A DNA stretch of 64,000 nucleotides from Klebsormidium nitens (lineage: Eukaryota; Plantae; Klebsormidiophyceae): the NCBI GenBank assembly GCA_000708835.1, contig DF237323.1, forward strand, positions 1 through 64,000, written 5' to 3'. Both the position numbers and the translations under genes were made by a program. Of this stretch, positions 15,726 to 45,633 are shown piece after piece; within the stretch, counting starts at the first letter, position 1; each line of letters begins with the position of its first letter. Below the pieces are notes generated by a model. The model was given only the letters and a program-made list of their open reading frames with translations, searched no databases and was not told the origin of the DNA.

Positions 15726-21662
<5,937 letters not shown>

Positions 21663-24180
21663 CGAGTTTGTCGATCCAAGAATAACGAGAGCGAAGGCGA
21701 GAAGTTGGGAAGAGGTTAGCAGGGCTAACAACCAATCCGCGAAACATCGATAATCGAATAGCGCTCCCTTATTGATGAGATTTTGACTTCGAGAAGAGGA
21801 TAAAGAGAGTATTAGACATCTGATTACCTGAGACTGCAATGCTTCTTTTGGATCGAGTGCACTTCGATCTGGAGCCAAATGACGAACAGTTTTTGGTGCA
21901 AATAGTACAAAGTGCAAACTCACAGCCCTGTTGTTATCGTCACACTGTGACACTGAGGCTAAAGTGCTGTATGTTGCTATTTTGGCGCTCTCAGGCTCAA
22001 TAGTGAACTCCGTGTCTGATGGCTGACTGATAATCGAGGATGCAATGCTTGATCATACGATGATTCTGAAAAGGCCTTGCGGCGGCGGCCCCTTGCCCAT
22101 AGCTAGGCGACTTTCTTGAACAAAGCTTCACAGATTTGAGGGTCAACCGAGGAAGTGCCAGTGGTGGTTGGTTGTAGTAACGTGACTCAGTGCCTGGGTG
22201 AAGCAGCCTGAGCATATTTACTTCGATTCCTTTTAAGTTAGATTATTTGTTTGTCTGGGCTTCCACCTTTGGTGGCTTGTCGAATTGCATGTCGACCCTC
22301 CTTCAGTGGCACATATATGCGGCTTGCTGGTAAATCCTCGCCGTGAGAGATCCATTGTGACCTTTGGCCGGCCACTCAGCCATCTGTCTAAGTACGCTTT
22401 GATCCTTTTAAAAAGACAGTATTGCAGTCACTTCTTGCCCGCAAATGATCGCGTTTCGAGGCTCCCAGTTGAAACCGGCGAAACTGGCCGATTTGATTTT
22501 CAAACTTTGATGATCTTCCTTTCGTTTGATTTGATCAATTGAAGACGAATTTTAGAGCGGCAAACATCGCAAGGATGACAAGGTTCGGTCAGAATAACTC
22601 TCTAACTGTGTTTTGCGAACGCGTCAAACATGCTCGGTGTTCTCAAGTGCATGATCAGCACTAGTACGATAACTGGCGACTAACTGATATGGCCAGAAAA
22701 GCCAAGGCTGCCAATTCTAGAGTTGGGAAAGAAGCTGCCAGCAAGTCTTGACAAATTTAGATTGCGTGAACGTCGCTGGCTATGATGAGACCGTCGCCCA
22801 GATTTGACGTCAGTCGTGACAGCCAGTGTTGTCAGAGTATGCGACACTAGTCTAGTTCTTGTTCTGTAACCGTTGGGATTCTCATCTCTAGCTCGCGTGA
22901 CCATTTCAAACCATTGAAACACTTGTCAACCAAGGAGACTCGTCCAAAGCTAGGTGACTGGGACTTCTAGCTCCGATACTCATGGGGCTCCTCAGAAAAC
23001 GTTCGCCTTTGTTGAGCATCTGATGCCACCCGGCCAAGACCAGTGGGGCTCGTGCGTAGCTTGATTCAGACTTCTTCCCGCTTTTCCTTTGATGATGCCA
23101 GTATGCCACATACATCTTCCCGTCACTCGAAATCGAGACTTTTCGGAGCGCCCTAGCCGGGCGACCATCTTTATTGTTTGCAGATTCTTCAGATTTTGTC
23201 TTTCGTCTTTCGCGCCAATCAGGGGCTCTTTGATTTCTCAAGGACGCAGTAATAGATCTATAGTCGGGTCTAGCGAGCTAAGGAAGGCAGGCAAGCTCAC
23301 TAACTTGAAAATACCCCGCAAATGTCTCCCCGGATCGTGATGCCAAAACAAATTTGTTACTGTATCACGCCGAGCGGATTCAATCTAGTGCATCGCATCA
23401 TGTGCGCCAAAAAGACGCCCTCTGACTGCTGCCAAAAGTCTGCTCGTAGCTGTGCCTTCGCTGTATCGCACTACACGGATGCCTTTAAAACAAGAGAAAG
23501 CGTCAGGATCGTATCCGACGCAGCGCCGGCCGTGACTGAGCTTTGATTCGTGTCTACCGAAGACACGAGCATTTCTCCTCATGACGCCGTTTGCCAACAT
23601 CAAAACGGCCCCTCTGCGCAGCTTCGCTTTCGGGCCTATGCGCGCGCAAGTTGCCCACGTGAACCTCATGGATCCACAAGGACCCACGTGGGGTAACGGC
23701 AAATAGGATCTGCGGAGCCCATACTTCAGCGGGGCCCCTATTTGCCTTTGCGCGTGCGAGACGCTCAAGAGAATCTCAGTGAATATAACTTCTCGGTTGC
23801 TGCGGTGCTATAGGTATTTAAACTTCACCTACTGAAGCGTCTCGTCCAGCTGTTGCTAACGAGCTTCGGCCGACTCTCGAAAAGTGTGCGGTTCCGCTGA
23901 TCTGTGCAGTTTTTCCTACAGAGGAAGCGTTGCTTTGGCTACTTTGGTCAAGATGTGCAAACCTGCGAAGCAGGATGGGCGGTACATTGTCTTTTTGGCT
24001 GTGACGGAGCCTCGCATGTCCGAACAGACAGAAAGATTCAGCTGGTAGTCATGACAGCCAGGAGCAGCCAAGTGTCAAAATCTGCCGGTCCGTTACGTTT
24101 TTCTTCAAACCAGGTTGACGTCATGACGTGATTGATGTACTGTCAGCACTGCGTATGAGGAGTCGCTTCTTCCGTTGAAT

Positions 24181-24264
24181 AGGCGGTGATCAAAAGTGCG
24201 AACGGATCCTGTGGGAAGTTTTCTGAAACCCCATCACGGTTGGTACACTGTCTCGCTGACGCCT
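24181..24264 (+). ncRNA. Box C/D-like unit (family F)
   Basis: aggcg-GTGATCA...CTGA-cgcct, perfect 5-bp terminal stem. Confidence 0.45.
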
Positions 24265-24763
24265 TTTCGATGATCTTACTTCTCGAAGCGTGCTCTTTCA
24301 TCCAAAGTATGCGAGAAGCAAGTTGAACCGGGTCTTCCGAAATAGAACGGATGGTACAGTACTTCGAAGTCAATTATTCTGGGGGCGGTATAGAGGGTAC
24401 TTTAAAATTTCGCTCCAGCAAGACCCCCCAACTCCAATCATCGGTGGGGAGCTTGGGCGGCGCACAGACGACTAGAAAGGCTGAATGAAGCCGTTTCGGT
24501 GGCTGCTGATGCCGCATAATCAAAGCAACTTTCCTTTATCGCCTAAAACACTGAAACCCCTAATACTTTAAAACCCGAAAACCCAAAAAACCGTCGCCAA
24601 GCGCTTCTGGTATGCATCTTGCGCCCATCGAAGAGGCTTGCTGATTGACGCTGAGACTTGGATCCGGACCGGTCGCTGTTCTTTTCATTTTGGGTAAAGT
24701 CGTCGGCCTGATTGATGACAAAACGGGCCGGGGAGGTGGTAAGAACTTACTCGACGCAACACC

Positions 24764-24827
24764 GGCAGTGATTGAGTTTCGTCTCATGTCTTGCAAAGAC
24801 ATCGACGCAGAAGTCACTCCTGATGCC
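24764..24827 (+). ncRNA. Box C/D-like unit (family A2)
   Basis: ggca-GTGATTGAG...ctcCTGA-tgcc. Confidence 0.5.
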
Positions 24828-26175
24828 ATATGATGAGGTGATGAGGTGAAAACGGCCCCTTTGCGCATCTCTCGTCATCCGCAGGGCCTGGTGATTAACC
24901 TGCCCACGTAGACGCACGTGGGGCAACAGCGAACAAAATGCTGCACCGCCTTTGACCCTCGGCCTGGTCTCAGAAAAACCTGTTCCCACAGCGAGTTTTC
25001 AATGCAACTTTCCTGGTCTCAGCCGTTTTTACAGATTAAAAGCGTATTGCAAACATCTTGTAAAGCCGAGTATTTTCTGCCGATTCTTCGACTTGATTGC
25101 GGTATTTTGCAGTCTGTGCTAGCTCAAACGTAGCGTTGATGAGTTTAAGAACTTAAGGAAGAGTGCCCCCCAGAATAGCAGTTGGGTGCTTTACATTCGC
25201 TTTCTGGCTATTATGGAGCTTCAGAAAAGTCTGACCAGGACAAGGAAGAGTCGCACCGTCTTGATGGCTAGGAGCCGCTCCCATTTTTTTGGCCGTTCTG
25301 AATCTTCGCCGAATGATGTTGACGTCGTCATGACGTGAGGAAGAGTCAGTCACCGTTGCCAAAGCGTGCTTGAAAAAGTAGCAGTACGTGGACAGCGTGC
25401 CTCTCCGCGGAATGATCAAAGTCGTGTTTTCGACATGATCCCAGCTATGCACCTTTCGTTCAAACGGCTGATGTTGTGACGGGCGCGCGTAGGCCGGGGC
25501 GCGCGCGGCTGGGCTGAGCCGCACGCCTCAAGTGGGCGGCTTTGGAAGAGATCGAGCTACATTAAGGATCAACGTAGACTGTCCAGAATTCCGGCATGTG
25601 AACGATCGACTCCGTAAATGGTATTGCAGGAAGACATCTTCTTTCGCAAGAGTCTCGATCGACAGTGCGCCTTTTCTCAAAACTGGAGTGAAGATGTCCA
25701 ATCCCTGATCCGAGCGATGCAAATGCGGTGAGTCGCGACGTCAGTGACTGCCTTGCCTTCTCACCTACAACGTAACTTTACAGCGGTGATGCAGGCTTTC
25801 GTGAGGCCGGTTTCGACCCTTCTCAAGGATCAGCTCGAAGTGTCTGCTGATGCTACGACCTTTTCGCTTGCGTGGTCCGGAAAAGATTGTACCTCAGCAT
25901 CCGGACGTACTTCTGGGCTCTTCCAACGTTCACGACTTCCAGTTGGAGTAGCGGGAGGTCAATCAGGGTTTAAACTAGAAGAGAGCCACTGTCACTTTTG
26001 CCAACCAATTCCGGGACGGACATTGAATAAGATTCCTAAGCCCTTGTATATATTCGATTACTGAAAAGGCGATGAGTGAAGATCCGACCGGACACGATGG
26101 GCACTTCACAGCCTACCCATGCGAAAACTGCCGTCCCAGTGACGCCTTTCAAATTACTGCTGCTTAGCTTCGACA

Positions 26176-26353
26176 CTATAAATCAATACCCGGTTTAAGA
26201 TCGTTTGCTGAGGCCGTTTTGATCTCAGCAATTCAGCTTTTAAGATCAAAATGGTCTGACACAACGTTTAAGATCAAAATAAGCCTGAAAACCTGAGTAC
26301 GTTTAAGATCGAAGTGGCCTCACAACGATCTTAAACGGGGCTATCATTTATAG
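26176..26353. mobile_element. MITE-like element with ~30-bp TIRs and internal TTTAAGATC repeats
   Basis: Left ctataaatcaatacccggtttaagatcgtt vs reverse complement of right ctataaatgatagccccgtttaagatcgtt. Absent from the paralogous position at ~34477-34495. Confidence 0.75.
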
Positions 26354-27946
26354 TTAATTCTCTAAATGAAGCATGCTTTTGATGTGGGTAGTCTGAAATA
26401 AGAAGAGGTACTATGTAGCGAAAGTATGGAATCGTCGGTGATGAGAGTTGCAGGTTGGGTTGCATGTTTTTGGCCCAGAGCCGTTCCCTTGCGGAGAACG
26501 AGCGGCATACACATCGTATGCGTGAGAACGTTAGTCAACAAGTCCTGCCGAAGTCTGTTCGATAGCTTTGTATTTTGCTACGTCGCAGTCCAGTGTCTTG
26601 CAGTACAGAGGGTCTTGATAAACGAAAGAATCTCTACGTGGCGCTGGCGTAACTGAGCTTTGTCTCTTGTCTAGTTAATACATTGACCTTAGCATGACCT
26701 CCTGATGCCAGTCGCACGCCGATCGGCAACAAAATCCAACGACCTCTCTTCGCGTACTACCCAGTCATCCGCAGGGCCTACGGAATGAGGTCCTGCCTGA
26801 TTTCCGAACCCGCTCACTTGGACACACGTAGGCACCGAGGAAACTTTTCAGAGCCATTAGTTTTCCAGCGGGGCCGCTTTTAGTTTGACCATCTCTCCAA
26901 CCGAACTTCAACCGGCTTAGGTGAATAATGGAATCAAACCCCAAAATTATGACTATCTCTGAGTCCATCGCTACGTACGAACTCGCATTCTCTCAGAAAC
27001 AAGGACTCACACGTTTCGTTTTCTCGATCTTCGAAAGGCTGTGTGTCCTCTTTCCAAAAGCAAAGCGAAAGCAAAGTACTATCCCGTGCAAGTCAGACGA
27101 TCGAGACATTTCTAGACTATGCAAACCTTCCGTCGCAGCCGGTGGCGATTCAGTTCAACACATACTCAAAACGTCCTCCTTTAGTCAAGCCCCTCGGCCG
27201 ACCCTTCGGCCTGCAATTCTGCTGATTTGCAATTTGTCCTCCAAGAAATCCCTCTTTGGCTACTCTGATTGGACGAAGTCGAGTAAAATTTGCGATCGGA
27301 TCGGTGCATACATTGCTTTTTGCCTATGATCCTGGAGTTTTGCGTCTGTCTGACCAGCACAGATCGTGCATGACGGATCTCCTGAAGGCCGAAAGCAGTA
27401 CGTTGTACGTTCAAATCGCTGCCGTTGTATAACTTTCTCCGAAGGATGTGGAAGTTATGACGCCATAGATGTCAGTACTCTACCGGCCGAAAATGGCACC
27501 CCGGATTCTTTCAAGCGCGGTTCTGATCTCTGGAAAAGCATGGACGTCCTCGAAATAAGCCAACGTTTTGTAATCATGGGAGTCGATGGTAAAAGAGTCG
27601 ACCTGTAAGTTCGCGCCATTTGCAAAGCAGCCTTGGTTGAAAATCTGACAACGTATCTCCTTGCAAAATTGTGGTCACGAATGTGGGCGGGAAGGAGGAG
27701 ACGTATCAACTTAGAAACCGTCCGCCAGTTGAGCCGGCGCGCTGGCGGAGATGATCATTGCGATGTTCGGTTGCTGCTGTTGGACGCTTATTTTGGATCC
27801 GTTTGTATCCCTGCAGATTAATAGTATGGACTGAACGGTTTTTCATTACGGGGACAATTGTGAAAGTGGTTTGACATGTCCGCGGTAAGATGCACGTCGC
27901 CTCAGTCGCCGTCCTGCCTATTCATCTAGTTGCTAGCGCAACATTC

Positions 27947-28032
27947 AGCAATGATGCAAGATATCTGAGCGGGACTTCAACTTTCCTGTAAGACTTGGCT
28001 CACCGGTCTTCGTTATCTTCAATGCTGATGCT
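27947..28032 (+). ncRNA. Box C/D-like unit (family E)
   Basis: agca-ATGATGCA...tgCTGA-tgct. Confidence 0.5.
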
Positions 28033-29483
28033 ACCATTTTAACTCGCTAGAATCAGATTCGGTTTCTCCTAATCCAGCAGTTCGGGGTTTGACGACTTAC
28101 CTCTTGAAGAGGAATGGCCAGACTCTCAAACTTTTCCGAGTTTCTCAACGAGTCGCATACGGCCGGGCGAAGAGAATCATGGCATACATCTACTTAAGTT
28201 GGGCCCTACCTTGAATCCATACTTTTTAACTATTTTCAGAGGCGCTGAGGTTATGGGGTGCGTCGCAGGATGTGCCAGTACGCGCGCGCGGTACGAAGGT
28301 ATTGCTTACACAAGGCAGTGATCAAAAGTGTGACGGGATGCGGTGGGCAATTCAAAATCCACAGAGTGACATTTCCCCTGACGCCTTTCGATCGCTCCAG
28401 TTTTCGAAGTTGCATATTTTTCATGTGAAGTGTTTGCAATGGATACCTCGTGCGATGCGGCATATTTCGCTACGATATAGTCCCACGGGTGCGATTTGGG
28501 ATATCGCATGTCCTGTTCAAACAGACAGTCTCCTGCAGAAAACAGTACAGCGGAGAGGCCAGATCATTGGGGAAGAAGGGGAAGAAGAGAAAAAGTCGAA
28601 GGGCAGCCTTCAGCGCAGATTCAAGGGACTTAAGGGGGGGGAAATCAACATCTCGTCAAGGAACACCTCGTTACCGCCGCCTGAAGCTGCATGTAACCAC
28701 GGAGAAACATTCCATAATAAAGTCCAGCGTAATATTCTGGGGTAGGCGCATTGATGGTCACGCAACAGCTACCGTTCACGGCGTGCATATGTACTATGAG
28801 ATGGATTCTTGGAAAGCCCGTTTAATTGGGAAGGTGCTGGATCCTCAGTGCACTAGAAGATTTGACGCCCATAAAGTTTATGTCCAGGTCGACATCATGA
28901 GGCCAAGAGCCGCCACGTGGCCTTCGTAATCATCGCGCTCTCCACCCAGCTCGTGCTCAGAACCTGTGCATTTTTTATTCACTCTCAATGTAATCAGATC
29001 AAAATCGTCCTGATTTGGAAAGAAGAATTTAGAGCGCGCGCGGCAAATTGGACTGGACGCGAGCTGGCGATGTTGACTTTTTGAAAGGGGTCTTTGACGT
29101 TATTTGCAGATGGACCCTGTGCATGTCGTCAGTGCCTCCGTAACTTGCCCACGTAAACCCACGTGGACACACGTGGACCCACGAATCCAGCACGAAAAAT
29201 TTAGTGCTCGTACCTAAGCGGGGCCTGTTAGTAAGACTCTGCGCCCCTCAGTCGACGCAATCACAAGGGTTTGGCAGTGCAAAGTCTCTGGTCGCCTCCA
29301 ATGCTTCAGATCAAGAACGTGATGTGGGACGTTTACGTGGAGCTACAAATCATCGGCCGACCCTTTAAAAATTTGCGCTTCCGTTAGCTTTCTGCAAATT
29401 GTGCTCGGATGTAACACTCATTTCGCTACTTGGATTGACGGTCACCACCGAAGTGAAGATTGGATAGGTGCACGAGGTGATTT

Positions 29484-29554
29484 TTGGCAATGATAGAGCT
29501 TCGCGCATGTCTGACTTGACAATCGTAGAATCGTTCTGCGGTCCTGACGGCCAA
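29484..29554 (+). ncRNA. Box C/D-like unit (family A)
   Basis: ttggc-a-ATGATAG...CTGA (D')...CTGA-cg-gccaa. Confidence 0.5.
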
Positions 29555-29964
29555 TGAGAACATAATCAAATCAGGAAATTGCCGTGTGGTAATAATCTCC
29601 AAACGATGTGAACGTCATAAGTGGCTGATGTAACGTGAGCTGCACTGTAATGATGGGGCTTCTGCTGGGCTTTTGCAAGGGGTTTGCACGTATGTAGTCA
29701 ACCAAGTCGAGATGAATATAGTGCATCAATCAACCCGTTTTGAGCGCCAGAAGGGACCGTAGTCCTCAGAGCCATCCGAGTCTCGTCCAGGAGGAGCTCG
29801 ATGCTGAGAGCTTCGCCGTCAAAAAATCCCGGCAACGTTTGTAAAGCTGTATTTCACAGCGCATGTGGTCCCCAAGATATGTGACCAAGTATGCATGGGC
29901 GAAGTTGATGAGACGCACGAATGGCAAGTCTGGTGCTTCAAAGGCGCCGGCTTAGAAATCAAAG

Positions 29965-30300
29965 TATTGCAGATTCGGGCAAACCTGGCCGCCTGACCCG
30001 AGAACCGATTGGGACCGATCGCAGAACCTGCCCGATGCACAGAACTTGGACCGGGCTTGGACCCTTCGATGACGCAAAAAGGCTCCATCGAACGGCCCAA
30101 GTTCTGCGTCTGTTCCTTTGAAAAGGTTTGCCGATTGGCTCTGACCGGACTTGACTGGCCAGGCCTCGCAGAACTTGGGCCGTTCAATGAAAGGCTTTTG
30201 GGTCATCGAAGGGTCTCAAGTTCTGCGCATCGGGCAAGAATTGCGATCGGTCCCAATCGGACTTGGGTCAGGCGGCCAGGTTTGACTTGAATGTGCAATA
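29965..30300. mobile_element. 336-bp foldback / MITE with ~135-140-bp inverted arms and TA termini
   Basis: Arm tattgcagattcgggcaaacctggccgcctgaccc...cccaagttctgcg (29965-30108) is the near-perfect reverse complement of 30167-30300. Confidence 0.8.
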
Positions 30301-31890
30301 ATGTGATGTCAGATAATCTGCTGGATTTGGATGTCTGTCATGTTGGATTGATCGTGAAGCCTGCAGGCAATAACGGTTGACTGAGTGGTCCCTCCTTTCC
30401 AGGACGTAGTGTGATAATCCTGATCCGGCTCGTTTGCCGCGATGAGATGTTAAGACGCAACTTCTCCTCCCCTTCCTATTGACCGCGAACCAGCATGCTG
30501 GGCGGGGTGTATCAGGGCATTTTATTGGATCAGGCCCTGTTCTGATTGCAAATTCTCTTCTTAGATTTGGTAAGACCGATACCTATCGTGCATATATAGC
30601 GTGATCGGCTTGGCCAGTGCTCGCGCCGTGTAAAGATTTGAATCGTGCTGCAAATGGTGACGATTGTAAATGCAACCGGACGCGCACGATGTCTGAAAGG
30701 GAGATTCGGTGCCAAGCGGTGCTTGTTGCTCTTTATAAGTTTCGGGTTTCTACCTCTCGTTTGGTGCTCGTTATTGACCTTAACGTCGACGAAGCCGTGA
30801 ACTCCCTTTCGGAAGCTGCTCCTCGCGTTCGCATCGGCACCTTTCGGAGGAATCACGCTTTTGGGTTTAAAAAATGCTCAGGTACCTCATCGTAACCTCG
30901 GGTCTGATTTCCGTTTTGAAAGTTTGCTGAATGAAGCCTTCCGCTTCCTTGTCACGAGTTTTATCGCTCTGCATGCATGGGAAACAGAGATAGACTGTTC
31001 TCGCGTTTTCTTCTTTTTGCTTCCCCTTTGATTTGGCTTAGTATGCTGCCTACGGGAAAATGAATTGGTTTACCCGTTGAGCGGAGCGCTGCAACTTACT
31101 CTCTGGTCAAACGGCCCACCTCAACTCAGTTGATGGTCAGAAGGACCTATCTTGATTCGGTATGCGGCTCAGAAACTTCAGCTCTCACACTCGTTGCGTT
31201 TAAAATTCGGCTAAAATTTTTCCCAGTGATTGCCCGCATCAAAGCTAAGCTTTTCTCCAGTAATCGCCCGCATCAAAGCTCCAACTTTGACAGCTATCTC
31301 AGTAGGAGCATGTCCCCTGCTTTGAGGATTTTGTTACGTCACCACGTTAGTCCCCTAGACTTTCCGATCACATAGCACCTTCTATTTCATGCGGGGAAAG
31401 CCTCCCCTCGAATCATTTTCGGGTTAATGATTGCTCCTTTCATCGAGCTTAGGGTTTCTGACGTGCAAGTGCTTTGCACAAGTTTTTTCGCTTCGAACTC
31501 GTTCTCTAGACAGGCAATGAGGTTGGGGCAACTGGGACCTTTCCCCACGTCGCCCACATAGAGTTGCATGGACCCTTCTGATGCCGCAAAATTAGCGACT
31601 GTTGGTACTGGAAGTGATTAGATACTCGTTTCGCTGAATAGATTGCGAGGCACGTACCCTTGCAGCCTGAGAAAGAGTACACGCGTCTTTTTTGGGCTGC
31701 TAAGAATTGCACACACAATATGAATGTTTTGATATACTAGCACGCTGCGAGTTGCCTCTGCATAGAACAAACATGTACGTGCAGCGAAATCAAATAGGTC
31801 GGTTCAGCGCGGATCGGATCCGTCAGAAGATACGTAAGTCGGAGCAAAGACTCGACTCAATATGCAGCCGACGACTAGAACGGGGTCCGC

Positions 31891-32080
31891 TGCAGCGGAA
31901 GCGGACCTGTTTCCGCACCAGAATGAGCTTCGAAGTGGCGGAACGGACCCGCTGGCGCTCACGCGCATCGCGGCCGCAGCAGACGAAGCCCGCAGCAAAA
32001 CGGCATCGCTGCTCATTGCAGCGGAACCGGTCCCGGTTCCGCACCGGAATGGACTTCAAGCTGGCGGAACGGACTGGCTG
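31891..32080. repeat. Two ~64-bp direct repeats
   Basis: tgcagcggaagcggacctgtttccgcaccagaatg...ggcggaacggac at 31891-31954 and tgcagcggaaccggtcccggttccgcaccggaatg...ggcggaacggac at 32017-32080. Confidence 0.75.
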
Positions 32081-32990: not shown

Positions 32991-35900
32991 TCTGCCAATC
33001 GGAAACGAGGCCCCTGCGTGTCTTGCAGTGAGCGGCAGTTTCGATAATTTCAGCTCACGTGCAGCCACGTGGGCTGATAATCGGCGAACAAAGTCTGCGT
33101 CGGAGCCCTCGGACTCACCGCGGGGGCTCCGTATAAATACGGTACTACGCAGTCCGTAGACGACTTGGATTGGATACTTATAAGCCATAGCTTCTTTGGT
33201 CGCGGCCGGTGTTACGCATAAGAGCCGGAAGCCAACGTCGTGCGCAGCTGAAGAGCCTCCGCTCTTTTGCATCTCCGCTTTCTGCAGTCTGTGCTTCTAC
33301 AATGCGATTGTTTGGCTGCTCAAATGGAATGGTGGTCACCGAAGCGATTAGAAATGGGTCGGTGCACGTTGTCAATTTTGGACTAGCCTATGATGGAGCT
33401 TCGCGCATGTCTAATTGCCAAGACAACTTAACAGCGGTCGGAAATCCTGATGGCGAAGGAGCGGTTTCGACCTCCTTTTTCACTTCCAATCGAGCCTTGA
33501 GGCATACTTACATATGTAACATAAAGACGAATGGGCCTTTGTATTCAATCAACTTAGTCGTGCAAACATCAGACTTCTGCTAAATCGGGTCAGCTGATAG
33601 CCTCCACCTCCCGGCCTCGAAGCAATCCATTCGGGATTGGCGCTCGATTGTAAGGGCGTCGACGTCAAAGCAGGTGTGTGGCGTCACCACAAGCAGCATT
33701 TGAGAACTCATCTCTCTATGCGAAACAATTATTCCCTCGAAGTGCGATCCACGCCAATACCTGCTGTGTAACGCACGCGGATTAAGTCGTTACGGTTAAG
33801 TCAGCGCGCCCATGCAGTCGCGCGCCTCAATTGCGCGGCCTCAAAGAGAGCTAGACGGCTAATAATATAGATCTAGGAATCATAGGCTTTGTAAGTGCGC
33901 TCAAACAAAAATGACTCCAGCACACAATCCTGCCGGAAGATGTCTCGTTTCTGCGACATTCAAATCAATGTGCGCTCATCTTTGAAGTAGAATGGAGCTG
34001 TTCGATTATCCACGATATAAAAGCTCCTTGAAAGCGCTTCAGTGATTGCCCTACCTTATCACTTTCAAAGTAAACCGTCAGCAATGATGCAGAGGCTTTG
34101 AGCCCGGTACTGATTTTTCTCGAAGGATAAGCCCAATTCTTTTCCTAGTACTGTTTGCTAATGCTACGATTTTGTCGCTTGCCTGATCCATTGTAACTCA
34201 GTACTTGCTGGAATTTCTATCGGCCAGCCGTCGTCGTTGATACCTCCAATTCACGTTGTGGTAAGTCAAACGGAGTCTTGAACCTTATTTAGAAGCGACC
34301 TTCTCCCCATGTTTCGAAAGAGTCGTATTCATCCGGGACGGGAAGTACTAGGGCGTTCCTGAACCCCTGCCAACCTTCAATTACTAATTTGAGAAGGCGA
34401 TGAGTGAAAATCCGACCGGAAGCCATGGGCACTTCACAGCCCAACCGTGTGAAGACTACCGTCTCAGTGACGCCTTTGCTGCTTCACTCTTTTAGTGAAG
34501 CATGCAGCTTTTGATGTGGGTAGTCTGAAACGCGAATAGGTACCATGTAGCGAAAGTACGACATCCTCGGTGGTGAGAGGTGCAAGTTGGAATGAAGGTT
34601 TCTGGCCCAGAGCCTTTCCTAGTTTGCTGAGGAATTAGTAGCGGCAGACACGCCGTATGCGTCAAAACTCCTGCCGAAGTTTGTTCGGTAGCTTTGTATT
34701 CTGCTACGGCGTAATCAAAAGTCTCGCACTTCCAGAGCGTCTTGGCAAACGAAAGAAGGCAATCTCTACGTGGCGCTGGCTGTGACTGAGCTTTGTCTCG
34801 TGTCTACTTAAGACATTGACCTTAGCGTAACCCCCTGATGCCAGTGGCACGCCGATCGCTGGCAACAGAACTCAACAAACCCTCTACGCGATGCAGTCAT
34901 CCACAGGGCGTACGCAACCCGCCCACGTGAACCCACGTGAGCACTGGCGATTCGCAGATTCAGAGCCCTTCGTTTTTCAGCGCGGCACCGGTCTTTGTAA
35001 GAGTGGTCTCTTCAACCCAACATCAGCAGCCTTACGGTCATTACGGGTATGATGGAATCAGGGTCCATGATTCAGAGTTTCAGTGAATTCACTGCGCCTA
35101 CGTACTCGCATTCCCTCAGAACAAAGACTGATCATCCCCCTTACCGGGCTGTGGATCTAATCAATCTTTGAAGGGCTGCATGTCCTCTTTTCGAAAGCGA
35201 AGCGAAAGCAAAGTAGTATCTCGTGCAAGTGAATACGATCAAGACAGCTCTAAGCTATGCAAACTTTCCGTCGCAGCCGGAGGCGATTCAGATCAACACA
35301 TACTCCAACCGTCGTCCAAACTCAAAGCTCCTCGGCGGACCCTCCGACCAGTGCAGTTCTGCTGATCTGCATTCTGTTCCTTGATTAAGCGAGCTTATCT
35401 TTGGCAAATCCACTTGGAGATTGCCCAGCGAAGAAGGGCGACTGGGTCGGCGCATACCAGATATCCTTCTCTGGCTATGATCGTGGATCTTCGCGTCTTT
35501 TTGACCAAGACAGAAGGGTCCTCCAGCAATTCCTTACGGCCAGGAGAAGTCCTGGTCCCGATGTTGCCGTTTTATAACTTTCTCCACACGATGTTGTTGG
35601 CATGACGCGATTGACGAGATGTGAGCACTAGTGGGGCTAGTCTTGTATCCCAAGGTTCCTGATACGCTCCTATTAAAATTACTTTGGAAATTTGATCTCG
35701 GTTGCAGTTCCCTAAACCAAAGGTAAGCGGCAGACAGGGGGTGAAGTTAGGACGATTGGGCTATTTTCGAACCTTGCTCAAACAATGCTGTACGGTCCTT
35801 CTGATGCCGCAAACCTGCAATGACCTTTGGCACTGGAAGCGCATCCTAGCTGGTTTTGATCGTGCTAAGCAACAGCAAGTTGCAATCTGCTTGCTAACTG

Positions 35901-36564
35901 AAAAGTAACGCGCATCTTGAAATTAAGTGTCAAAATAACACGTCGGACGTCTTCCTTGGTGTTTACTACCACGGTGCGACGTCTCGTTGCTGCCACAAAT
36001 CAGCTCTTTTTGCAGTGAAACGGAAGGTCAGTCCGCTAGGCCAGATTGAAAGCCTCAGGAGGAAACGTCGACAAAACCAAACACCCAACCACAGAATTTA
36101 TGTACCCGTACTCGTGTTCATCATCCAATCATTCATCATTCCTATTTACTTCTGGTGTGTTGTCTGGCTAAGACAACAACAACGAGTACTTCTGATGCCA
36201 TCTGCCGAATGGTTAAAGTCGCCCCCTGGCGTCTCGGCTAGCCACGTTCCGCCAGATCGGCCAACGTATCTCACATGGACCCATGTCCCTGACAGAACTC
36301 TAGAGAGCCCTTGCCTTTGCGGGCCCAAATAAGAAGTCCGTGGCCCTCGAGGCGAGCGCAAGAGTTCCGGCCGATTGCAATCAGTCTGGCCTTCTTAGGA
36401 ATTAGGAAAGCATGTCAAGAGTTCTTGCAAGAGTCGAGAATCTCGGTCACTCTTCTCTTCTGATCCGGTACGTCAAACCTTTTGTGCTCAGTATCAAACT
36501 TGCGTTTGGCTACTCCTGTTGGGAGGTGGCCTTTGATTAAGCAACTAAGGCGGAAAGGTGCAAA

Positions 36565-36584
36565 NNNNNNNNNNNNNNNNNNNN
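36565..36584. other. Assembly gap (20 N)
   Basis: Run of N in the sequence. Confidence 1.
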
Positions 36585-36597
36585 GATAGCTTCAACT

Positions 36598-36661: not shown

Positions 36662-38950
36662 GAGCTACTCCGATTGCTGTTTTTGCCGGACTGGATCGTT
36701 ACCAAACGTTGTTGAAGTAGTGACGTGATTGAACTTTTATATAAGTACTGATGGGCTTGGACTGTGATTTCTATATATATGGAGCGGGAATGACATCAAG
36801 GCATCTTTCAGTTGGTTCTTGTTGTCCGGAGGGAGTACGTTACCGATATCGTCGTCGCAATCAAGGATCCATGAAATGCTCGGTGATGTTAGAGAGCGGG
36901 ATCGATGAAAGCGACGTTTCCGCCAAGGCAAGTGTACGGTATTGCAGAGCAGCAATTGAGAATGTGCCTCTCCGCGGAGTATGACCACATCCGTGTTCTA
37001 CACCGCACCTCCGCTGCGCGCCTCACGCTGTGCTCGCGCGCGCAGCTCGCGCCTCAACGGAGGGCCGCCCCTTGACTTGAGTGCTACATGGATCGACGTA
37101 CTTCGTTCTAAATTTGGGCGTTTGATTGCTCTTGCGCATGAATGTTTGTGTGGGAAATATTCCACTTTCTGCAGAACGGCAACATCTCAGGCTGTTCCTA
37201 AGACATAGTGTAAAGGTGTTGGGGTCAACTCTCACAATTGGCAGGTCGCCCCAGCTTGTTCACGGTGTTTCTGAAGCCAAAAACTATCCGCAATTCTTGC
37301 AACCAGCATCCGTTGATCTGCCATTGATGGTGACAGGAAGCCTTTCTCTGACTACTCGGTTGACAGAATGAACGTCGAGGCAAGATGATTGGGTTGCATG
37401 GTGCTTGTACAGAATCTTGGCAATAACGGGGCTTCGCCTATGTTTGACCTGCAAGACAGAGCACGAACGTCGGTCCTGACGGCCGGAAGCTGATCCAGTT
37501 TTAGTTTTGCCCTTCTGTGGATCTCTCCACGACGAAGACCTATGAATTCCTTGATGTAATATGAGGTCTCACAGGGCTTCTGTTCCCTCCCCAGCCGAGA
37601 GACACCGTTGGACATTATTCGACCAGTTTCTGATTAGCCAAAAACAGGATTACAGACGAAACAAAGCGAGTGTTCATATGGGCACCTGAGCTTGATGGTG
37701 AGATTGTCAAAGTTGTGGTAAGTTCGCGGGGTCTGCAAGGCAGCTGACTTGACAACGAACCACCTTTAGGACTATGTTAGGAACATGCGTTTACTCTACA
37801 GCTATCCCTCAGCCTCCGTAAAATTCACTAGGGCCCCCGGCGCGTGGGGCTGCGCCGTGTGCTTCAAATGGCGCCCCTAAAAGAGAGCAAGAGCTTACAT
37901 GCATTTGAGACATGTGAAACTCCTGAAGGCGCATTGCCTGCCACGGACTGCCGATGCGGGCGCTTGTGAAGTATCTGTTCATGCTTCAAGAAATCAAAGG
38001 CGGTGATCGAAATCAGGAACGGGAGCGGTGGGCTCTTTGGAGTGCACACAGGTGAAATGAATGTCTCGCTTGAAGCCTTCTGATCGCTACGTTTCGATTC
38101 CCGAGCATGCTTTTAATCCGAGGATTTTGAAGAGTGCAAATCGGAACACGAGGCTAGACCTAGCTGGTGAAATTTCGGAGATGAGAGCTTTGACAGCTGG
38201 CAATGCATTTCATCCAGATTCAAGTCAATTTCTCTTGCAAAGAAAAGAGCGGCAGAAAAATACGTTGATCAATTTCGCAAGATTACTCTTGGATCATGAC
38301 GCCAAAGACGTGAATCGCCGCCGATCGGATCTACGTACTTTGCTTTGTATGCTCAAAGACGCTTGCCAACTCCCACCGAAATCTTTTGTGGGCTTCATGT
38401 TTGCTGCTTTACCAGATTTATTTTGAACACCTGAAAAACAACAGATTGAACTAGCAAGAACCTACTTGGCAAATTGCTGTCTGTGAATGAGCCTTCGCCT
38501 ACGTCCAGCTAAGACACATACCGAAAGCAGCGTGCTCCTGATGCCAGATGCGAAATAAAACTTCCCCTCATGTGCGCATCTCAATTCTTCCTTAGGACCC
38601 GCAGAATGGGTTCACGTGGACCCACGTGAGCAGTCAGCGGACGGAATGCTCCAAAGCTATTTGAACTTTAGCGGAACTCTGTGATGGAACCTGCGCGCGC
38701 CCTAGAGGCGACTGTGGCCAGAAACATTCAAAAGAAAAACGGTCGCAGGCGCCGTTGCAACGATTCAGAAACATACGCCGCAGGTGGCGCGCGAAGCTAT
38801 CTTCGATTTGGGTTTTCTATTTCCTTGATCTGCGTTCCGCCAATTCGCAGCGTGTGCTCAAAGGAAGGTAGCCTCATCGCCGCTTGTTTAGCTAAGTAGT
38901 TACTAGTAGTGATTTAAGGCATGAACAACGCGTCGGTGCCAATTTGACTT

Positions 38951-39029
38951 CTGGCTATGATGGAGTCGCGTAGGTCTGACCAAGACAAGCAAGTTGCATG
39001 ACATCATCATGCAGGGGTCCTGATTGCCA
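38951..39029 (+). ncRNA. Box C/D-like unit (family A)
   Basis: tggct-ATGATGGA...CTGA...gtcCTGA-ttgcca. Confidence 0.5.
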
Positions 39030-41509
39030 CGAGTAGTCTCCGAATTCAGGGCTCTCCCGACTTGTAACTGATATTTAGAACGATCTAAACGTGCGTCTTG
39101 ACTGGATGCTGAACCAGAACACTCTAATGAAACCGTGATTCACCGAAGGGGAATGGCATCAAAGCATTTGGCATCAAATCGGTTCTGATTGCCAGAATCG
39201 AATGAACCGTAGTCCTCGAACCAATTGAAATTCATAGGGAAAGAAACAAAAAGTCGTCAGATTTCATAGGAGGAAGCTCGATGATGAGAGCGTCGACGCC
39301 AAAGCTAGCACATTCGCGGCTTTTGCGAAGTAGGACTTGGCAGCGTATGTCCCTGTAGAATGGTCAGGTTCGTGTTTCCTACCACTATTTCCACTAGCCA
39401 CCTCATGATGCTGAAACACCTGATCTCAGATGGTCTCGAGGCAGGGTCGCGCCCTTCAACTGGGCGGCCTCTGAACAGAGCCATAGGAGTCAAATTCAGA
39501 GTTGCAAAGTCAGGCGGCTGATAACACTTACGTCGCCAGAGACTTGACAAAAAGTATCCAGTTGGGCCATATAGACATGGAATCAGTTGCATCATTGCTC
39601 ATAGACACAAGGTGATTGGCTGCTGGTTTAAACATTGTGCTGGGATCGCTTCCACTCTGCAAATCTCAAAGGTGCTTATACAACATTGGTAAGCTGCCAA
39701 CGAGTTGATGGCTCTTTGCCCATGCAAGCTCTTCAGATCACAAGCTAGCACGTTTGAGATTCTGTAGTTCAATAACCTCAGAAGACAAACTATTCTTTGG
39801 TGTCCTGCATGAGCTCAATCTTACTCTCGTGGTCTGCTTTACACGCTTGCACATCGAAGTTGAATGGCAGACAGGCAGTGAATTCTGGTGTCAGAACGCA
39901 TGGAAGGAGAACGTGGACTCCAGTTCTCATTTGTGGACCCCCACACCACTGGTTGAAACTCTGCACGCGCAGATCTAAATCGCCTGGTTGAATTACAGAT
40001 CACCGGGTCGTTTCTTGGGCGACTGGAAAACATTTGCAAGGTTTGTATGCATGCATTTCAGCGCTCGGTGGAAATCGAGCGGGTCGGTCAGCAATACGCT
40101 TTGAGTTACGTTACCGTGGGTTTGCTAGTTCACGCGCGTGGCAAGCCCTAGCTCAATGTCCTTGCGCGCGCATGTTGACTGTTGTGGGGTCTCGGACTGC
40201 AAATCGCAGTCCGCGTTCTCCTTCCATCCGTTCTATCACCACCTAAAGTGGGCACAAATTCGAAGAATTCAGTGCCCACAAATGCCGGTCATCCTGATGT
40301 CGCACGGTTAGCGCCACCGTGGACCAGTGCAGTTAATATTCAGATTACCCAGATCGCTGCAAGAACGTCCCGGCCAAACTTGCTTGCGAGTCAGGCGGCG
40401 TGTCTCAGTGGAGAACGATCCTGCAAAGTGCCCAATGCTTTAGTACGCACGGGATTCATCTAAAATTGCCCGTACGTAAGCATCCTTTCTGGCTCTTGGC
40501 AATTTCGAGGTTTTGGTCGAGCTAAGCAGGGCACATGCATCGCGCGCTTTTCAGGCTTTCTTCCGCCCAAAAGCTACACGTGTCCTCAACGCTGACAACA
40601 TGGCATGGCGCCTCCGAGTCACCGGTGTATTCTTGTTCTGCTAGCATGGAGGGATCGAATCCGCTTTTGCGGAGATTGAATTTCGCAAAGTCAGGCCCCG
40701 GAAGATAGCAAGGGTACTCAGATTGGAGCGGAATTTCTTTCTGCCGTTTGCATCGACACTGGCCCTTTCACCGTCGAACATCAATTTCGTGGAACAATGA
40801 AGATCCCTGATTGAAACCGGGAGAACATGTTCTGTATTTTTAGGGCCTGTTCTGAAGATTAGAGGCCAATAAAGCAACGATGCTGAGAATTATCGCCCTT
40901 TTGTGAGCTTCAGTTCCGCTGACCTCCATTCTACGGCCATAGGAATTGAAAAGCGTCAAATGTGCTGAATCAAAAACTGACAACCACTCGGAGCAAGCTT
41001 TACGTTCGTGAAATAAAATCGTGGCTATGATGAAGGTTTAGTGGCAGGTATGTCTTGTCAAGACACCGAGGGTCTTCCTACTTCTGATCGCCGGCCGGGA
41101 GCACCTCGTAATACGCCTTTGCCGTTCCATGTACTTTCTCCTCCACCGACGAATCGAAAGTGGCACGCGAGCAATGATGCAAACGTCTGTGTGATCCTGT
41201 ATTGTCGATTGTGCGGAAACTGCACTCCCGTTCTCGTTCTTGGTCTGAGGAGCGTTATTACTTTACAACTTGCATTTCTTTCCGGCCGGCATTCTGTCGA
41301 CGTCGTCTTCTCTCTTTGACGACGTCTGGTCAGATCACAGATTATTAAGGTCCTACCTCGAACGAATCGCAGGCAGGGCCTGTGCCGTTCCTACGCGTCG
41401 CCCTATGATGAGTCGTCTTTATACTCCTTTGAGTCTCTTCACTATGTGCATCGTGGATTGTGTGTCGACTTGGCGGTATGAGCGCCTCTAAGATGATACT
41501 CTTGCTTGG

Positions 41510-41596
41510 GAAGGCAATGATCTTAAACGCGGTGGGCACTTCACAGACCACGTCTGAGTACGTGAGAGACGCGCGCGCCGTCTCGCTGACGCCTTC
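41510..41596 (+). ncRNA. Box C/D-like unit (family F)
   Basis: gaaggc-a-ATGAT...CTGA-c-gccttc, 6-bp stem. Confidence 0.45.
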
Positions 41597-43632
41597 TGAT
41601 TGCGATAGGACTCTCATTGCGGGCTGAGTCCAAAGTGACGTGTCCAGCACATACATACCTGACGTCTGATCTTTGGCTGAGATTGGATCTTGTCTTATGT
41701 CTATCCGAGACAAGGACATCTAGGAGTGCTCGTGATGCCAGCTGCCATTAGATAATGGCCTCGCCTCTTCAGTCATTCTCAGAGCTATACACGACCTGCC
41801 CATGCATGCATGCGCGGGCGCGCGGGCGCGCCACGTGGACCCATGTGGGCATCGGCGAACAGAAGTCTGCGGAGCCAGAATTTTAGCGGGGCACATGGAA
41901 AGGTACTCGGCAGTTTCCCCTCGGACAACTCTTGATGCATATTCATTGTCTCTGCTGGTGCTATGGATTAGCAAGATACTCCGAAGGGTCTATGAAGCTG
42001 CTATAGGGTCCCGCCGATTTTCCAATCTGCGGTTCCGCTGATCTGCAGCTTGTGTTGACTTAATGGCTACTCTGTCGGGAACGTGACCGACGAAGCATGA
42101 TGATTGGGTCGCGTGGTGCTCGCACAAGTCTGTGGCGATGATAGAGCTTCGCTTACGTCTGATCAAGACAGCAAGATCTCCACCTGTCTCCTGACGGCCG
42201 GAGGCAGTTCCAATTTTACTTTTGCGTTCTGTGGATCTTTCCACGACGTACTAGGGCCTTTCGACCTCCTTGATGTATATGAGCCCTCACGGGCCAATCT
42301 GGTTTTTACCCATCGAACTGGAAAGACACGTTGGCAGATTCTTGAGCAAGTCGCTAAAAAACGTGTACTAGAGTCTTCAAATATCGAAACGAAGCGACCC
42401 AAGTGTCTGTTTGGGTGCGTAACCTGATGATGAGAGCATCAACGTCCAAATGAAAAGACGCCGTTTGCAAGACAGGCAGCTCCACTTAAGAAAGTTCCAC
42501 TTGCGGATTGTAGTCAAATTCGTAATCTGTACCACTATCCCTAATGTGCAACTCACTCGGGCCCGCGCGTGGGGCTGCGCCCTGCTCTTCGAATGGCGCC
42601 CCTAAACGAGAGCAATGGCAACTATATCCCAAAATATGTGAGACTCCCAAAGGCGCATCGCATGTGTCACGGTTTGCCGGTGCGCGCGCTTGTGGAGATT
42701 CTGTTTATGCTTCGAAAAGGCGGTGATAAGGGGAGCAGACGCGGTGAGCGCGTTGGTTTCCACCCAGGTTAACATGACCGTCTCGCCGAAGCCTCTTGAT
42801 TGTTACCTTGTTTCGTGGAGCAAGCTTTTGGTGTGAGTAGTCTGAAAACGCGGAAAAACGAAAGTGTGGCTCTATTTGGAGTTTCGTCGTTTAGGTGAGA
42901 GTTGGAAGTCGGCATGTATCCTATTGGAGAGGTTTTCGGTTCCAGAAGAAGCAGCGGCGGTTATGATCGAGACTCGAGTATGTCTGAGCAGAAAGATGTG
43001 GGTGTCCTGACGGCCGACAATCGCTCCAATCCTCTTTGATATCTGCAGACTTCTGACTAGACACTGTTCCCAAAGATGTGAACGTCGATCATAGTTGGAT
43101 GGTTGTCGAGACTTGGACGCTGCATGATGGGGCTTCTGTAATCTACCGAGCGGGAGAGACATCAGGACAATCTTTCAAAGTACCGGCTCGGATCACGAGA
43201 ATCTGCGAACCGTAGCCCTCGAAGCAATAGATTTTAGCCGGAGCTCGATGATGAGAGCGTCAATGTCCATGTTGAAGCTCGCGGCTGTTGCAATGAGAAG
43301 GACTTGGTAATTACGTACACTGTCATGAGGTTTGATACTGAGATTATTCTTCTCCACCACGTATCATTCCGCTGTAAAACCCCTTAAGGTTGGGTTACGC
43401 GCCTTCAAGTGGGCGACCTCTGGAAGAGAGCTATATGGATCGGATTATACCTGCCAGAATCCGGGCTTATGATGGTGGTTACGGTGAAGACTCTTTGCAA
43501 AAGAAATTAACCTGGTTTCTGCGCCCGTTCCTGATATTACATCTAAGATATCAAAGAATTTTGAATTGTCCTGCGCTAGGGGGCTAAACACTGCCTTACC
43601 AGTTTGTTATGATCATCTTCAGGTTTGTTCTC

Positions 43633-43716
43633 TAGCGTTGATGCAACTCTCGTGAGCGCGATGTCCAACATCCTTGAACGCTTAGCTCACGCTTCTCGTC
43701 GTAGTTGCTGATGCTA
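43633..43716 (+). ncRNA. Box C/D-like unit (family E)
   Basis: tagcg-TTGAT-GCAACT...AGTTGC-TGA-tgcta; both stems are extended. Confidence 0.5.
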
Positions 43717-45550
43717 CACTTTATTTCGCTCTTGGTGCGAGGAGAATTTGTTCAGTTGCTGCAGGCCTATTGCATTGGCCGTTTGCCCCTCTTGTTTTGA
43801 CGACTTATCCTTGGACGAATGTGGGCCAGACTCTCAATCGGATTAGAATCCCGAGGATCAACCTAGCCCTAGTATAAACGAGCCGCATTAATACTGTTGC
43901 ACAATACATATCGTTCCTTCAACATTGTAAGAGGCTGCTCTTACAACGATCAAAAGTGCATTCCTTCTGGAGACAATTTTGTCAGTTCGCGCTGGCGTGG
44001 CTGCTCAATTGTTGCTTAAAGATGGCGATGATTGAAAAAGCGAGCAAAAGCAGTGGGCACTTTGCAACCCAAGATCGGGCGCAAACTTACCCTAGTCTCG
44101 CTGACGCCTTCTGATTGTTGCGATCTTTTGCTTGCTTCTGATGTGAGGAGTTCGTGGCGCGGAAGGAGTGCCATTTGACATGCAATGCTTTGGCAAAGCG
44201 TTTTATGAATCTGAGTTGACTATTGGCATGTATCTTAGCGAAAGAATAGCGAAAGAACTTATCTTGCAATGCAAGGCGGGAAAGAGGACAAGATTTGATT
44301 TGAGACAATCATGCAAACAACAGATGGCGGCTGATCGAAGTACGTTTGATGGATAGATTTGTGCGTATCGGCGTTGGGGCGGAAACCCGGAACCGTGATC
44401 CAGACCTCCCTTACCGCAAACGTCAAGAATCCTTATTTGGATGTAAGGTGACGACAGCCGTGACGTTTCCCAACCTCTGAATATTGCGTTCGTGCGAGGA
44501 TCCACGAAGGTGTTCCAGGCGTTTTGTGAATTACCTAGAGGTCATCGACCAGATCCCCCGATTTGCACTCACTTGCAGTTTTTTGACTGCCGATTTGTCC
44601 TTGTAGAAAGCGAGTCACTTCGCTACTCCAGATGCGTCGTGACCATCGCATCAAGAAGACGAAAGGGTCTGTGCATAGTCGCATTCTGGATATGACGGAG
44701 CTCGCGCATGTCTGATCAAGACATGAAGGCCGTGGCGACATTCCTGACAACCACGAGCAGCTACGTTTCAAGGTTCTGCGGCTCAACTGGATCATCAGAT
44801 TGTAAGATTAAGCTATGTTTCCTTCCTGGATTTGTCGCCAATTTTTTTGTAACGTATCTGCTGCGACGCTATGTGCTGCAAGTATGTTTAGCTGAGAAGA
44901 TAAATCGGCGTGTGTACACGCCGCCTTTGTCGGCCCCTTTTAGCTCAGCCAAGAAAGCCGGGCAATGTCGTTCCCCAGTCTCACATTGATAAAATCCCCG
45001 GCTTCTTTCCCTGGACCTGTGTCTCCGGACTTGCGTCCCCGGTGTCCGGAAGGACGCGGAGCTAACGAAATACCGGACATGGCCGAGTCCGGGGAGGAGG
45101 CCGGGAAAGGGGCCCTCCCCGGGCTGTGCCCGGCCTTTTCCCCGGCCCCGGGGGAAAGCCAGGTTTTCCCTGTGTTTGATCATACTGTTTCAAATCTGCC
45201 GTTTTGTTCTTTTCTACACATTCGTGACGTAAGTGGTGTAACGTGAGCACCGTTCTGACGGGGCTTTTGTATCTATCGAGCCGGAGCGAAACCACGGCAT
45301 TCCGTCTATTGACGGGTCCAATACCAAAACGGAAGTCCTCCAAGCAGATCAACTCGAAGTTAGTCCTCGAAGTAAACCAACTGTCAAGTGGGAGCTCAAT
45401 GATAACAGCGCTGACGCTAAGTCAAGTTGGGCGTCGTTTGTAAATAGTTTCCGCGAATATATTCACGTTCGTGTTTTGCTTTCAGCCACAATCCCTTGGA
45501 TCGTTGCAAGTACTGTGCACGTCTTGCATGTTATCTACAGCGAAGTAGTC

Positions 45551-45633
45551 AGCGATGATGCAAACCGAATTGAGCCCGGTTTGAACCTTCTATAAAGCTT
45601 GGTTCATTCTTTGACATACTGTGTGCTGATGCT
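45551..45633 (+). ncRNA. Box C/D-like unit (family E)
   Basis: agcg-ATGATGCA...tgCTGA-tgct. Confidence 0.5.

Follow-up and report, generated by a model that had tools for sequence, protein, structure and literature searches.

A tandem array of probable box C/D-type small RNA genes, orphan and partly decayed in character, in the streptophyte alga Klebsormidium nitens

What is encoded in 23 kb of DNA of Klebsormidium nitens in which short units bounded by box C- and box D-like motifs recur, all on one strand? The stretch lies in a window of 64,000 nucleotides (contig DF237323.1, positions 1 to 64,000), eukaryotic DNA of about 50 % G+C from a streptophyte alga, and occupies positions 22776-45638 therein. 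On balance we favor the view that it is an array of lineage-specific, tandemly amplified genes for small RNAs of the box C/D (kink-turn) type, and the orphan and partly decayed character of this array is supported by the data presented here. Since the spacers of most modules have diverged beyond BLAST alignment and the box cores are still 0.82-0.90 identical, selection appears to have acted over most of the array's history.

Thirty-eight short units with lengths of 55-96 nt are present and belong to five families (A, 8 units; B, 14; C, 8; D, 2; E, 6). Families were established by eye and profiles (nhmmer) were then run on both strands of the whole window, yielding eight matches for A, 21 for the B/C superfamily and six for E (one of them weak), with E-values down to 1e-21, as well as two copies of family D at about 1e-25; a weak B-like unit at 22776 completes the total. 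Every profile match is located on the plus strand and inside 22776-45638, and neither the other 41 kb of the window nor the minus strand gave a family-profile match at E<0.05. An earlier reading made from the sequence only had proposed about 35 C/D-like units in at least four families, all on the plus strand, and had suspected that many copies may be dead. Number, strand and families agree well with our census, and degenerate copies are indeed numerous: about 30 of the 38 units retain the GA dinucleotides of both boxes together with terminal complementarity of at least 4 bp, and in about eight a GA core or half of the unit is gone. Families B and C are clearly paralogous, with RTGA-NGAGCTT..CATGTCT..AAGACA in common. 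Self-similarity detected by BLAST covers 74 % of the unit bases versus 25 % of the remaining bases. A strict scan blind to the families (RTGAT, 50-130 nt, [CG]TGA, stem of at least 5 bp) returned nine sites on the plus strand and one on the minus strand, compared with 3.5 ± 1.7 in shuffled sequences. The units are as follows.

22776-22830 (+): B unit, weak; ATGATGA ... GTGA, 6-bp stem
23993-24062 (+): B unit, nhmmer E=4e-12
25202-25272 (+): B unit, box C degenerate (ATTA)
27318-27393 (+): B unit, nhmmer match
29482-29553 (+): B unit, nhmmer match
33386-33456 (+): B unit, nhmmer match
35470-35545 (+): B unit, box D degenerate (CTTA); partly under RNA contig X1, 35485-35654
36597-36663 (+): B unit, intact; 13 nt past an assembly gap
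37416-37487 (+): B unit, box C degenerate (ATAA)
38949-39030 (+): B unit, nhmmer match
41021-41094 (+): B unit, ATGATGA, T before CTGA (A-T at stem II position 7)
42131-42201 (+): B unit, nhmmer E=5e-17
42959-43017 (+): B unit, nhmmer match
44684-44754 (+): B unit, nhmmer match
23524-23593 (+): C unit (B-related), nhmmer match
24761-24832 (+): C unit, nhmmer match
26642-26713 (+): C unit, box C degenerate (GTAA)
32923-32994 (+): C unit, nhmmer match
34774-34846 (+): C unit, nhmmer match
36161-36204 (+): C unit, 3' half only
38476-38550 (+): C unit, nhmmer match
41671-41744 (+): C unit, nhmmer match
24177-24267 (+): A unit, nhmmer match
26062-26150 (+): A unit, nhmmer match; an RNA contig of run X4 apparently from just downstream (about 26.35-26.44 kb)
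28311-28392 (+): A unit, nhmmer match
34390-34477 (+): A unit, nhmmer match
37996-38084 (+): A unit, box D TTGA
41508-41600 (+): A unit, nhmmer match
42714-42800 (+): A unit, box D CCGA
44020-44115 (+): A unit, nhmmer match
31505-31593 (+): D unit, nhmmer match
35732-35817 (+): D unit, box C lost
25780-25858 (+): E unit, nhmmer match
27945-28036 (+): E unit, nhmmer match
34078-34170 (+): E unit, box D CTAA
41168-41226 (+): E unit, 3' part diverged
43633-43719 (+): E unit, weak Rfam C/D match sno_ZL116, E=4.4
45549-45638 (+): E unit, last of the array

The UGA core of box C is kept in 33 of the 38 units, with deviations from RUGAUGA at positions 6-7 (ATGATGG in B, ATGATGC in E, GTGAYTG in C and GTGATCA in A); the variant of family B recurs in a bona fide small nucleolar RNA (snoRNA) at 18227-18311 in the same window. 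Box D reads NTGA, mostly CTGA, and its GA is present in about 35 of the 38 units. Both ends are united by terminal stems of 4-6 bp, namely AAGGCG/CGCCTT in A, CTGGCT/AGCCAG with a 1-nt bulge in B, GGCA/TGCC in C and D and AGCR/TGCT in E. Conservation was measured as mean pairwise column identity between copies, separately for boxes, terminal stems and interior; the P values are somewhat flattering, as the boxes served as anchors in unit definition.

Family B: boxes 0.89, terminal stems 0.66, interior 0.50 (P=0.0001)
Family C: boxes 0.86, terminal stems 0.76, interior 0.58 (P=0.014)
Family A: boxes 0.82, terminal stems 0.82, interior 0.50 (P=0.006)
Family E: boxes 0.90, terminal stems 0.93, interior 0.46 (P=0.0003)

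Unit ends are far better conserved than interiors, the GA dinucleotides being intact in about 87-92 % of the copies and the interiors staying near 50 %. Furthermore, the bases at box C positions 6-9 pair with those 5' of the box D TGA, as stem II of a kink-turn requires. In families B-E, 74 of 100 cells are paired versus 63.4 ± 2.9 with shuffled partners (P=0.0002); the values for the single families are 33/48 (B), 21/28 (C) and 18/20 (E). Stem II covaries between families: position 7 is a G-C pair in B and C; the five E copies all have C-G there, and the B unit at 41021 has A-T. The box C/D architecture that had been proposed from the letters is supported, with family A as a poor case of a kink-turn. 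Most copies of B and C also contain an internal palindrome with a variable loop, (CA)TGTCT-N5-6-AGACA(TG) (alignment columns 41-62), which may represent a hairpin in the RNA or a site in the DNA.

The array is more than a row of units. It is organized in about ten diverged modules of several elements each, including pairs of G-boxes and other conserved blocks that are not of the C/D type.

22776-45638 (+): whole array, about ten diverged tandem modules in the order G-box block, B, G, F, E, A, H, C

Nine G-box blocks are spaced by 1.2-3.9 kb, corresponding to module lengths, and each module holds 3-5 units. The last 3.9 kb consist of sub-duplications of B-G-F-E-A and contain no C unit. Old segmental duplications are seen between 26359-27469 and 34488-35614 (71 %) and between 37369-38114 and 42084-42829 (68 %). 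Outside the units most modules can no longer be aligned in a BLAST self-comparison, and Tandem Repeats Finder reported only small repeats, the modules being too diverged. Between the two closest modules, identity reaches 83-89 % for units A and C and 56 % for the spacer.

The G-box blocks carry CACGTG-type boxes, in seven of nine blocks as a pair exactly 10 nt apart, and in six blocks an element resembling AGCGGGGC follows after 42-47 nt. The array accounts for 14 of the 26 CACGTG sites of the window. Judged by its sequence, the block looks like a DNA-level promoter, one per module, and is a candidate small-RNA promoter. The blocks are listed without strand.

23656-23735: promoter-like block, two G-boxes, then AGCGGGGC
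24905-24920: G-box pair, 10 nt apart
26815-26874: G-box-like pair, 10 nt apart; AGCGGGGC 42 nt on
29150-29224: three G-boxes in 10-nt phase, then AGCGGGGC
33056-33071: G-box pair, 10 nt apart; TATAAATA about 70 nt downstream
34924-34986: G-box pair, 10 nt apart, then AGCGCGGC
36262-36277: decayed G-box pair
38613-38677: G-box pair, 10 nt apart, then AGCGGAAC
41832-41892: G-box pair, 10 nt apart, then AGCGGGGC

The CCCAC core of the block is common to upstream sequence element (USE) motifs of algae (PMC8287931). A USE/TATA promoter of the small nuclear RNA type was considered for the block and rejected: there is no TATA at the right distance, and the USE motifs available for comparison are those of other algae.

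Two further blocks recur between the units. F blocks (nine copies, with GGAGCTCGATGATGAGAGC) and G blocks (3-5 copies) bear ATGATGA or ATGATGG words, and their 5' ends resemble B units. They are without box D and without terminal stem and are therefore not C/D units.

27578-27678 (+): F block, profile match
29792-29891 (+): F block, profile match
33639-33724 (+): F block, profile match
36904-36990 (+): F block, profile match
37688-37769 (+): F block, GTAAGT after it
39273-39370 (+): F block, profile match
42419-42520 (+): F block, profile match
43239-43337 (+): F block, profile match
45390-45488 (+): F block, profile match
29600-29699 (+): G block, 45-59 nt past a B unit; TGACGTCA-type motif, then ATGATGGGGCTTCTG
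43070-43172 (+): G block, profile match
45220-45302 (+): G block, profile match

A coding role of the F block (ELDDESVDVK-like) was discarded, as stops and frame shifts differ among the copies. The H block, GCATGCTTTTGATGTGGGTAGTCTGAAA, is found 10-20 nt past A units (26370-26400, 34497-34530 and 42815-42845); it forms a mini TGATG...CTGA pair with a distance of only about 12 nt, and between the two closest modules its conservation is 80-88 %. A block after C units (23600-23620, 24850-24870 and 33010-33025) reads ACGGCCCCTNTGCGCA and is similar, in sense orientation, to GGCCCCUGCGCA of U6 small nuclear RNA, a likeness that is probably a coincidence, Rfam having reported no U6.

Do the units guide modification of ribosomal RNA (rRNA)? 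A reference is provided by the bona fide box C/D snoRNA at 18227-18311 (+), which is situated in an intron of the adenylate kinase gene 4.5 kb upstream of the array. It possesses box C ATGATGG, box D CTGA, an 8-bp terminal stem and stem II pairing, and its 13-nt guide AGCTCTAGAATTA is antisense to UAAUUCUAGAGCU of 18S rRNA as found in 10 ribosomal DNA (rDNA) loci. Its conservation in a related species (contig L124, 10934-11039) amounts to 92 %. The target set comprised 119 eukaryotic metagenomic rDNA loci, none of them full-length streptophyte, and covers conserved rRNA sites only. With this set the intronic snoRNA passes the antisense test as positive control, and the array units do not: their antisense 10-13-mers to rRNA are no commoner than those of their own sense strand or of the spacers. 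Nor are the guide regions conserved between paralogues. The failure to find an rRNA target by eye, as reported in the sequence-only reading, now has behind it a test whose positive control works. Two single matches were rejected. The large subunit (LSU) rRNA sequence ACAUGCGCG(AG) matches the B unit at 44684 over 11 nt (9 nt for the B consensus), which is at chance level and varies among copies; the match adjoins an internal CTGA (D') and lies between the plant sites Am661 and Cm675, on neither of them. A 12-mer of the D unit at 31505 to LSU rRNA has no adjacent box, and the paralogue is without the match. Apart from the array, a C/D-like unit is present at 47457-47541 (+), flanked by two conserved exons of the gene downstream, with an interruption in its 18S-type guide (CTCTAGAAT-AA-TTACC). 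As this unit is not conserved in the intron of the relative (contig L122), it is possibly a dead paralogue of the snoRNA at 18227.

Data on expression come from runs labelled RNA(?), which are stored as assembled contigs only and carry no end information. In one run, 6 % of the words sampled from 34.3-37.3 kb are present, and no run is listed for 41.0-45.7 kb. Four runs compared with 32.5-38.4 kb gave two short contigs with a depth of 3-6, in or beside units: an unspliced contig of 170 nt (35485-35654, depth 3.4) comprises the 3' part of the B unit at 35470 and its G block, and a contig of 488 nt (depth 6) matches 34507-34558 at only 90-95 %, its overhanging letters placing it at about 26.35-26.44 kb just downstream of the A unit at 26062. 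Both could stem from precursor transcripts at a low level or from DNA carry-over.

Relatives were reached via the flanking genes, with about 55 kb of non-redundant sequence out of about 82 kb fetched. A Logan contig of a relative retains the synteny of MEE18 and adenylate kinase as well as the intronic snoRNA and ends inside the kinase gene. On a second contig the downstream gene is preceded by a full inverted DUF900-like gene, and no unit is found there. Two contigs from the Joint Genome Institute (JGI) have a different neighbor beside MEE18.

A number of observations weigh against box C/D-type RNA genes. Canonical RUGAUGA is rare among the units, and family A, with no more than 10 of its 32 stem II cells paired, fits a kink-turn poorly. 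The covariation of stem II amounts to about two independent compensatory events. The claim from the sequence alone that flanking stems differ between copies yet stay complementary is true between families; within family B, however, the terminal stem lacks significant covariation (P=0.25). Pairing of the internal GTCT..AGAC palindrome reaches 71 % of cells and is not accompanied by covariation, and RNAalifold detected almost no consensus structure for families A, B/C and E. Conservation extends to elements that are not C/D units (F, G, H, the G-box block and spacer blocks at 85-88 %). The negative outcome of the rRNA antisense test counts on the same side, as do the four RNA(?) runs, which revealed no discrete small-RNA ends, contigs of this kind being silent on mature small RNAs. 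No copy of a unit occurs in the relatives' 55 kb, the coverage of which ends short of the orthologous place. Rfam reported no match at gathering score for the array, and a permissive scan gave only two at chance level (E=4.4 and 9.1), neither of them meaningful. This last point is weak evidence, because Rfam at the gathering threshold also failed to detect the intronic snoRNA at 18227-18311.

Three other explanations deserve consideration, of which one shares the C/D nature of the units and differs only in the route of biogenesis. The units could reside singly in the introns of a repeated, non-coding multi-exon host gene, with F and G blocks as mini-exons, and be freed by splicing and debranching, a layout realized in mammalian SNHG genes and in the SNORD116 host. 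An intronic position is usual for canonical snoRNAs of this genome, the one in the adenylate kinase gene being an example, G blocks follow the ends of B units at a constant 44-59 nt with a pyrimidine tract in between and contain stop codons in all three frames, and part of the G and F copies have AG on their left side and GTGAGC or GTAAGT on their right. Yet the acceptor AG is found in only about three of eight G copies and five of nine F copies, and many copies lack a donor. The four runs yielded no spliced joint, the contig across the B unit at 35470 and its G block being unspliced. The G-box pair in each of the modules speaks for many promoters and not for one host gene. We regard an intronic origin as unlikely.

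An array that is merely a relic, that is, a snoRNA cluster amplified by local tandem duplication of the kind common in this genome, no longer expressed and decaying, with conserved ends as the trace of past selection, would account for the almost complete lack of RNA coverage, for the roughly eight damaged units, for the foldbacks resembling miniature inverted-repeat transposable elements (MITEs) that have inserted in the array and for the lack of an rRNA target; 'echo' duplications are also present in other parts of the window. It is difficult to reconcile with box cores that are 0.82-0.90 identical in modules whose spacers mostly defy BLAST alignment, a state which needs long selection, and contigs from poly(A)-type RNA sequencing are a poor assay for small nucleolar RNAs; a mere relic is in our view quite improbable. 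Least probable is that there are no RNA genes at all and that the C/D appearance is accidental in a regulatory or transposon-derived tandem repeat of protein-binding DNA palindromes (CACGTG pairs, TGACGTCA, TGTCT..AGACA). Several of the best-conserved blocks are indeed palindromes typical of bZIP or bHLH sites, and the internal GTCT..AGAC is conserved without covariation. On the other hand, the C/D features are strand-asymmetric and constant in their order and spacing, covariation between families is seen in stem II, a transposon protein domain is lacking, and the copies sit at one locus in fixed order and orientation instead of being dispersed.

Box C/D-type genes remain our preferred interpretation, and a mechanism can be put forward for them. 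Each module would be a transcription unit of its own, driven by two G-boxes in 10-nt phase and the AGCGGGGC element about 45 nt further on; it is the presence of a G-box block in every module that favors this module-wise route. A long precursor would then be trimmed to those parts that are protected by Snu13, Nop56, Nop58 and fibrillarin on the kink-turn. Selection would act on particle assembly and not on a shared target, and the RNAs would hence be orphans with respect to conserved rRNA sites, with about eight of the 38 copies already dead. An extension of this proposal, which we offer tentatively and with considerable doubt, is that the array represents a standing pool of orphan C/D particles in which only kink-turn and terminal stem are selected and the guides drift freely. 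If true, such a pool would serve as a nursery of new guide specificities, or else it would supply snoRNA-capped long RNAs or sequester snoRNP proteins. A streptophyte alga would then have preserved it over a long period, independently of the mammalian orphan arrays.

The array is embedded between conventional genes. An open reading frame (ORF) at 14228-15106 (-) is 100 % identical to K. nitens 'maternal effect embryo arrest 18' (MEE18). The adenylate kinase gene (+) has its 3' end near 21.66 kb, and the array begins 1.1 kb beyond. On the 3' side the array adjoins a fragment of a DUF900-like gene of about 500 nt in inverted orientation (45865-46390). Since contig L122 of the relative (72-5835) has a full inverted copy of the DUF900-like gene where K. 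nitens keeps the fragment and the array end, comparison of the sequences identifies the 3' border as a rearrangement point. Within the array stretch, ORFs of at least 110 amino acids yielded no credible Pfam match, in agreement with the earlier statement that the region is devoid of a credible protein gene; exact-protein look-ups gave no record, the Pfam search of ORFs revealed no transposon protein domains, and a tRNA scan found none.

Three foldback or MITE-like structures were noticed in the array: nested inverted repeats over about 305 nt with arms 86-96 % complementary (29980-30284), an element of 170 nt with inverted ends of 27 nt, which the paralogous module lacks (26179-26350), and a 56-nt inverted repeat pair (39886-40241). 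A 64-nt direct repeat, 81 % identical, occupies 31891-32080 in a unit-poor part. On the minus strand, sequence remnants at 39.4-40.5 kb may derive from a heavily decayed inverted module, and a short assembly gap interrupts a spacer.

39583-40446 (-): possible decayed inverted module; E-like 5' end at 39600-39583, A-like core at 40446-40421
36565-36584: assembly gap (N run) in spacer, 13 nt upstream of the B unit at 36597

According to alignment with six paralogous modules, the gap takes the place of about 20-25 nt within a conserved spacer block. By paralogy its sides are collinear, with flanks in the order and orientation of the paralogues, and because the locus is non-coding a reading frame across the gap is not an issue.

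How does this organization relate to known ones? One standard is set by the intronic snoRNA of the same window, with which the array units share box C ATGATGG (in family B), box D CTGA, terminal stem, stem II pairing and similar length; in contrast to the array units as known, it has a 13-nt 18S guide and is 92 % conserved in the relative. In Arabidopsis, most of 226 C/D snoRNAs are encoded in clusters (PMC8583080, citing Brown 2001 and Qu 2001). Like the polycistronic clusters of Arabidopsis and rice, the array combines several C/D units close together on one strand outside of protein genes, and paralogous clusters arise by duplication in both cases. The plant type has a single promoter and a single precursor for several closely spaced snoRNAs; in the array, one G-box block per module of 3-5 units is a candidate for such a promoter. 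Plant clusters, however, usually span less than 2 kb with 2-8 genes, carry conserved rRNA guides and have dispersed copies, whereas the array comprises about ten tandem modules over 23 kb, with guides that are not conserved, no rRNA match and no plant family of Rfam.

In Euglena gracilis and trypanosomatids, repeats are nearly identical, contain working rRNA guides and often include H/ACA-like RNAs. Multi-gene snoRNA clusters arranged head to tail, presumably giving rise to long precursors, are a common feature, but the K. nitens modules are old and diverged, and none of their units was recognized as H/ACA. SNORD115/116 and SNORD113/114 are, like our array, large single-strand tandem C/D arrays without rRNA targets, possibly hosted in introns between repeated non-coding exons. 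Their copies are near-identical within a family including the guide region and have canonical boxes. The K. nitens copies, on the other hand, are 46-58 % identical inside, belong to five interleaved families and deviate at positions 6-7 of the box; splice-like flanks of F and G blocks exist in part of the copies, and no joints were seen. New in comparison with plant, Euglena/trypanosomatid and mammalian arrays is the combination of interleaved units from several families, old diverged modules and selection visible on assembly signals only.

To our knowledge, large tandem orphan C/D arrays are textbook matter only for the imprinted loci of mammals, where their function is still debated. Even if the units were not expressed, the locus would be a clear record of the amplification and decay of a snoRNA cluster. 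If our interpretation is true, the genome of K. nitens would harbor a third mode of snoRNA gene organization beside the intronic one, and the phased G-box pair with its proximal element would be a candidate small-RNA promoter. An independently arisen orphan C/D array would then exist in an alga that is small, can be cultured and stands near the root of the land plants, and this array would provide a tractable system for learning what orphan C/D RNAs do and how new guides arise.

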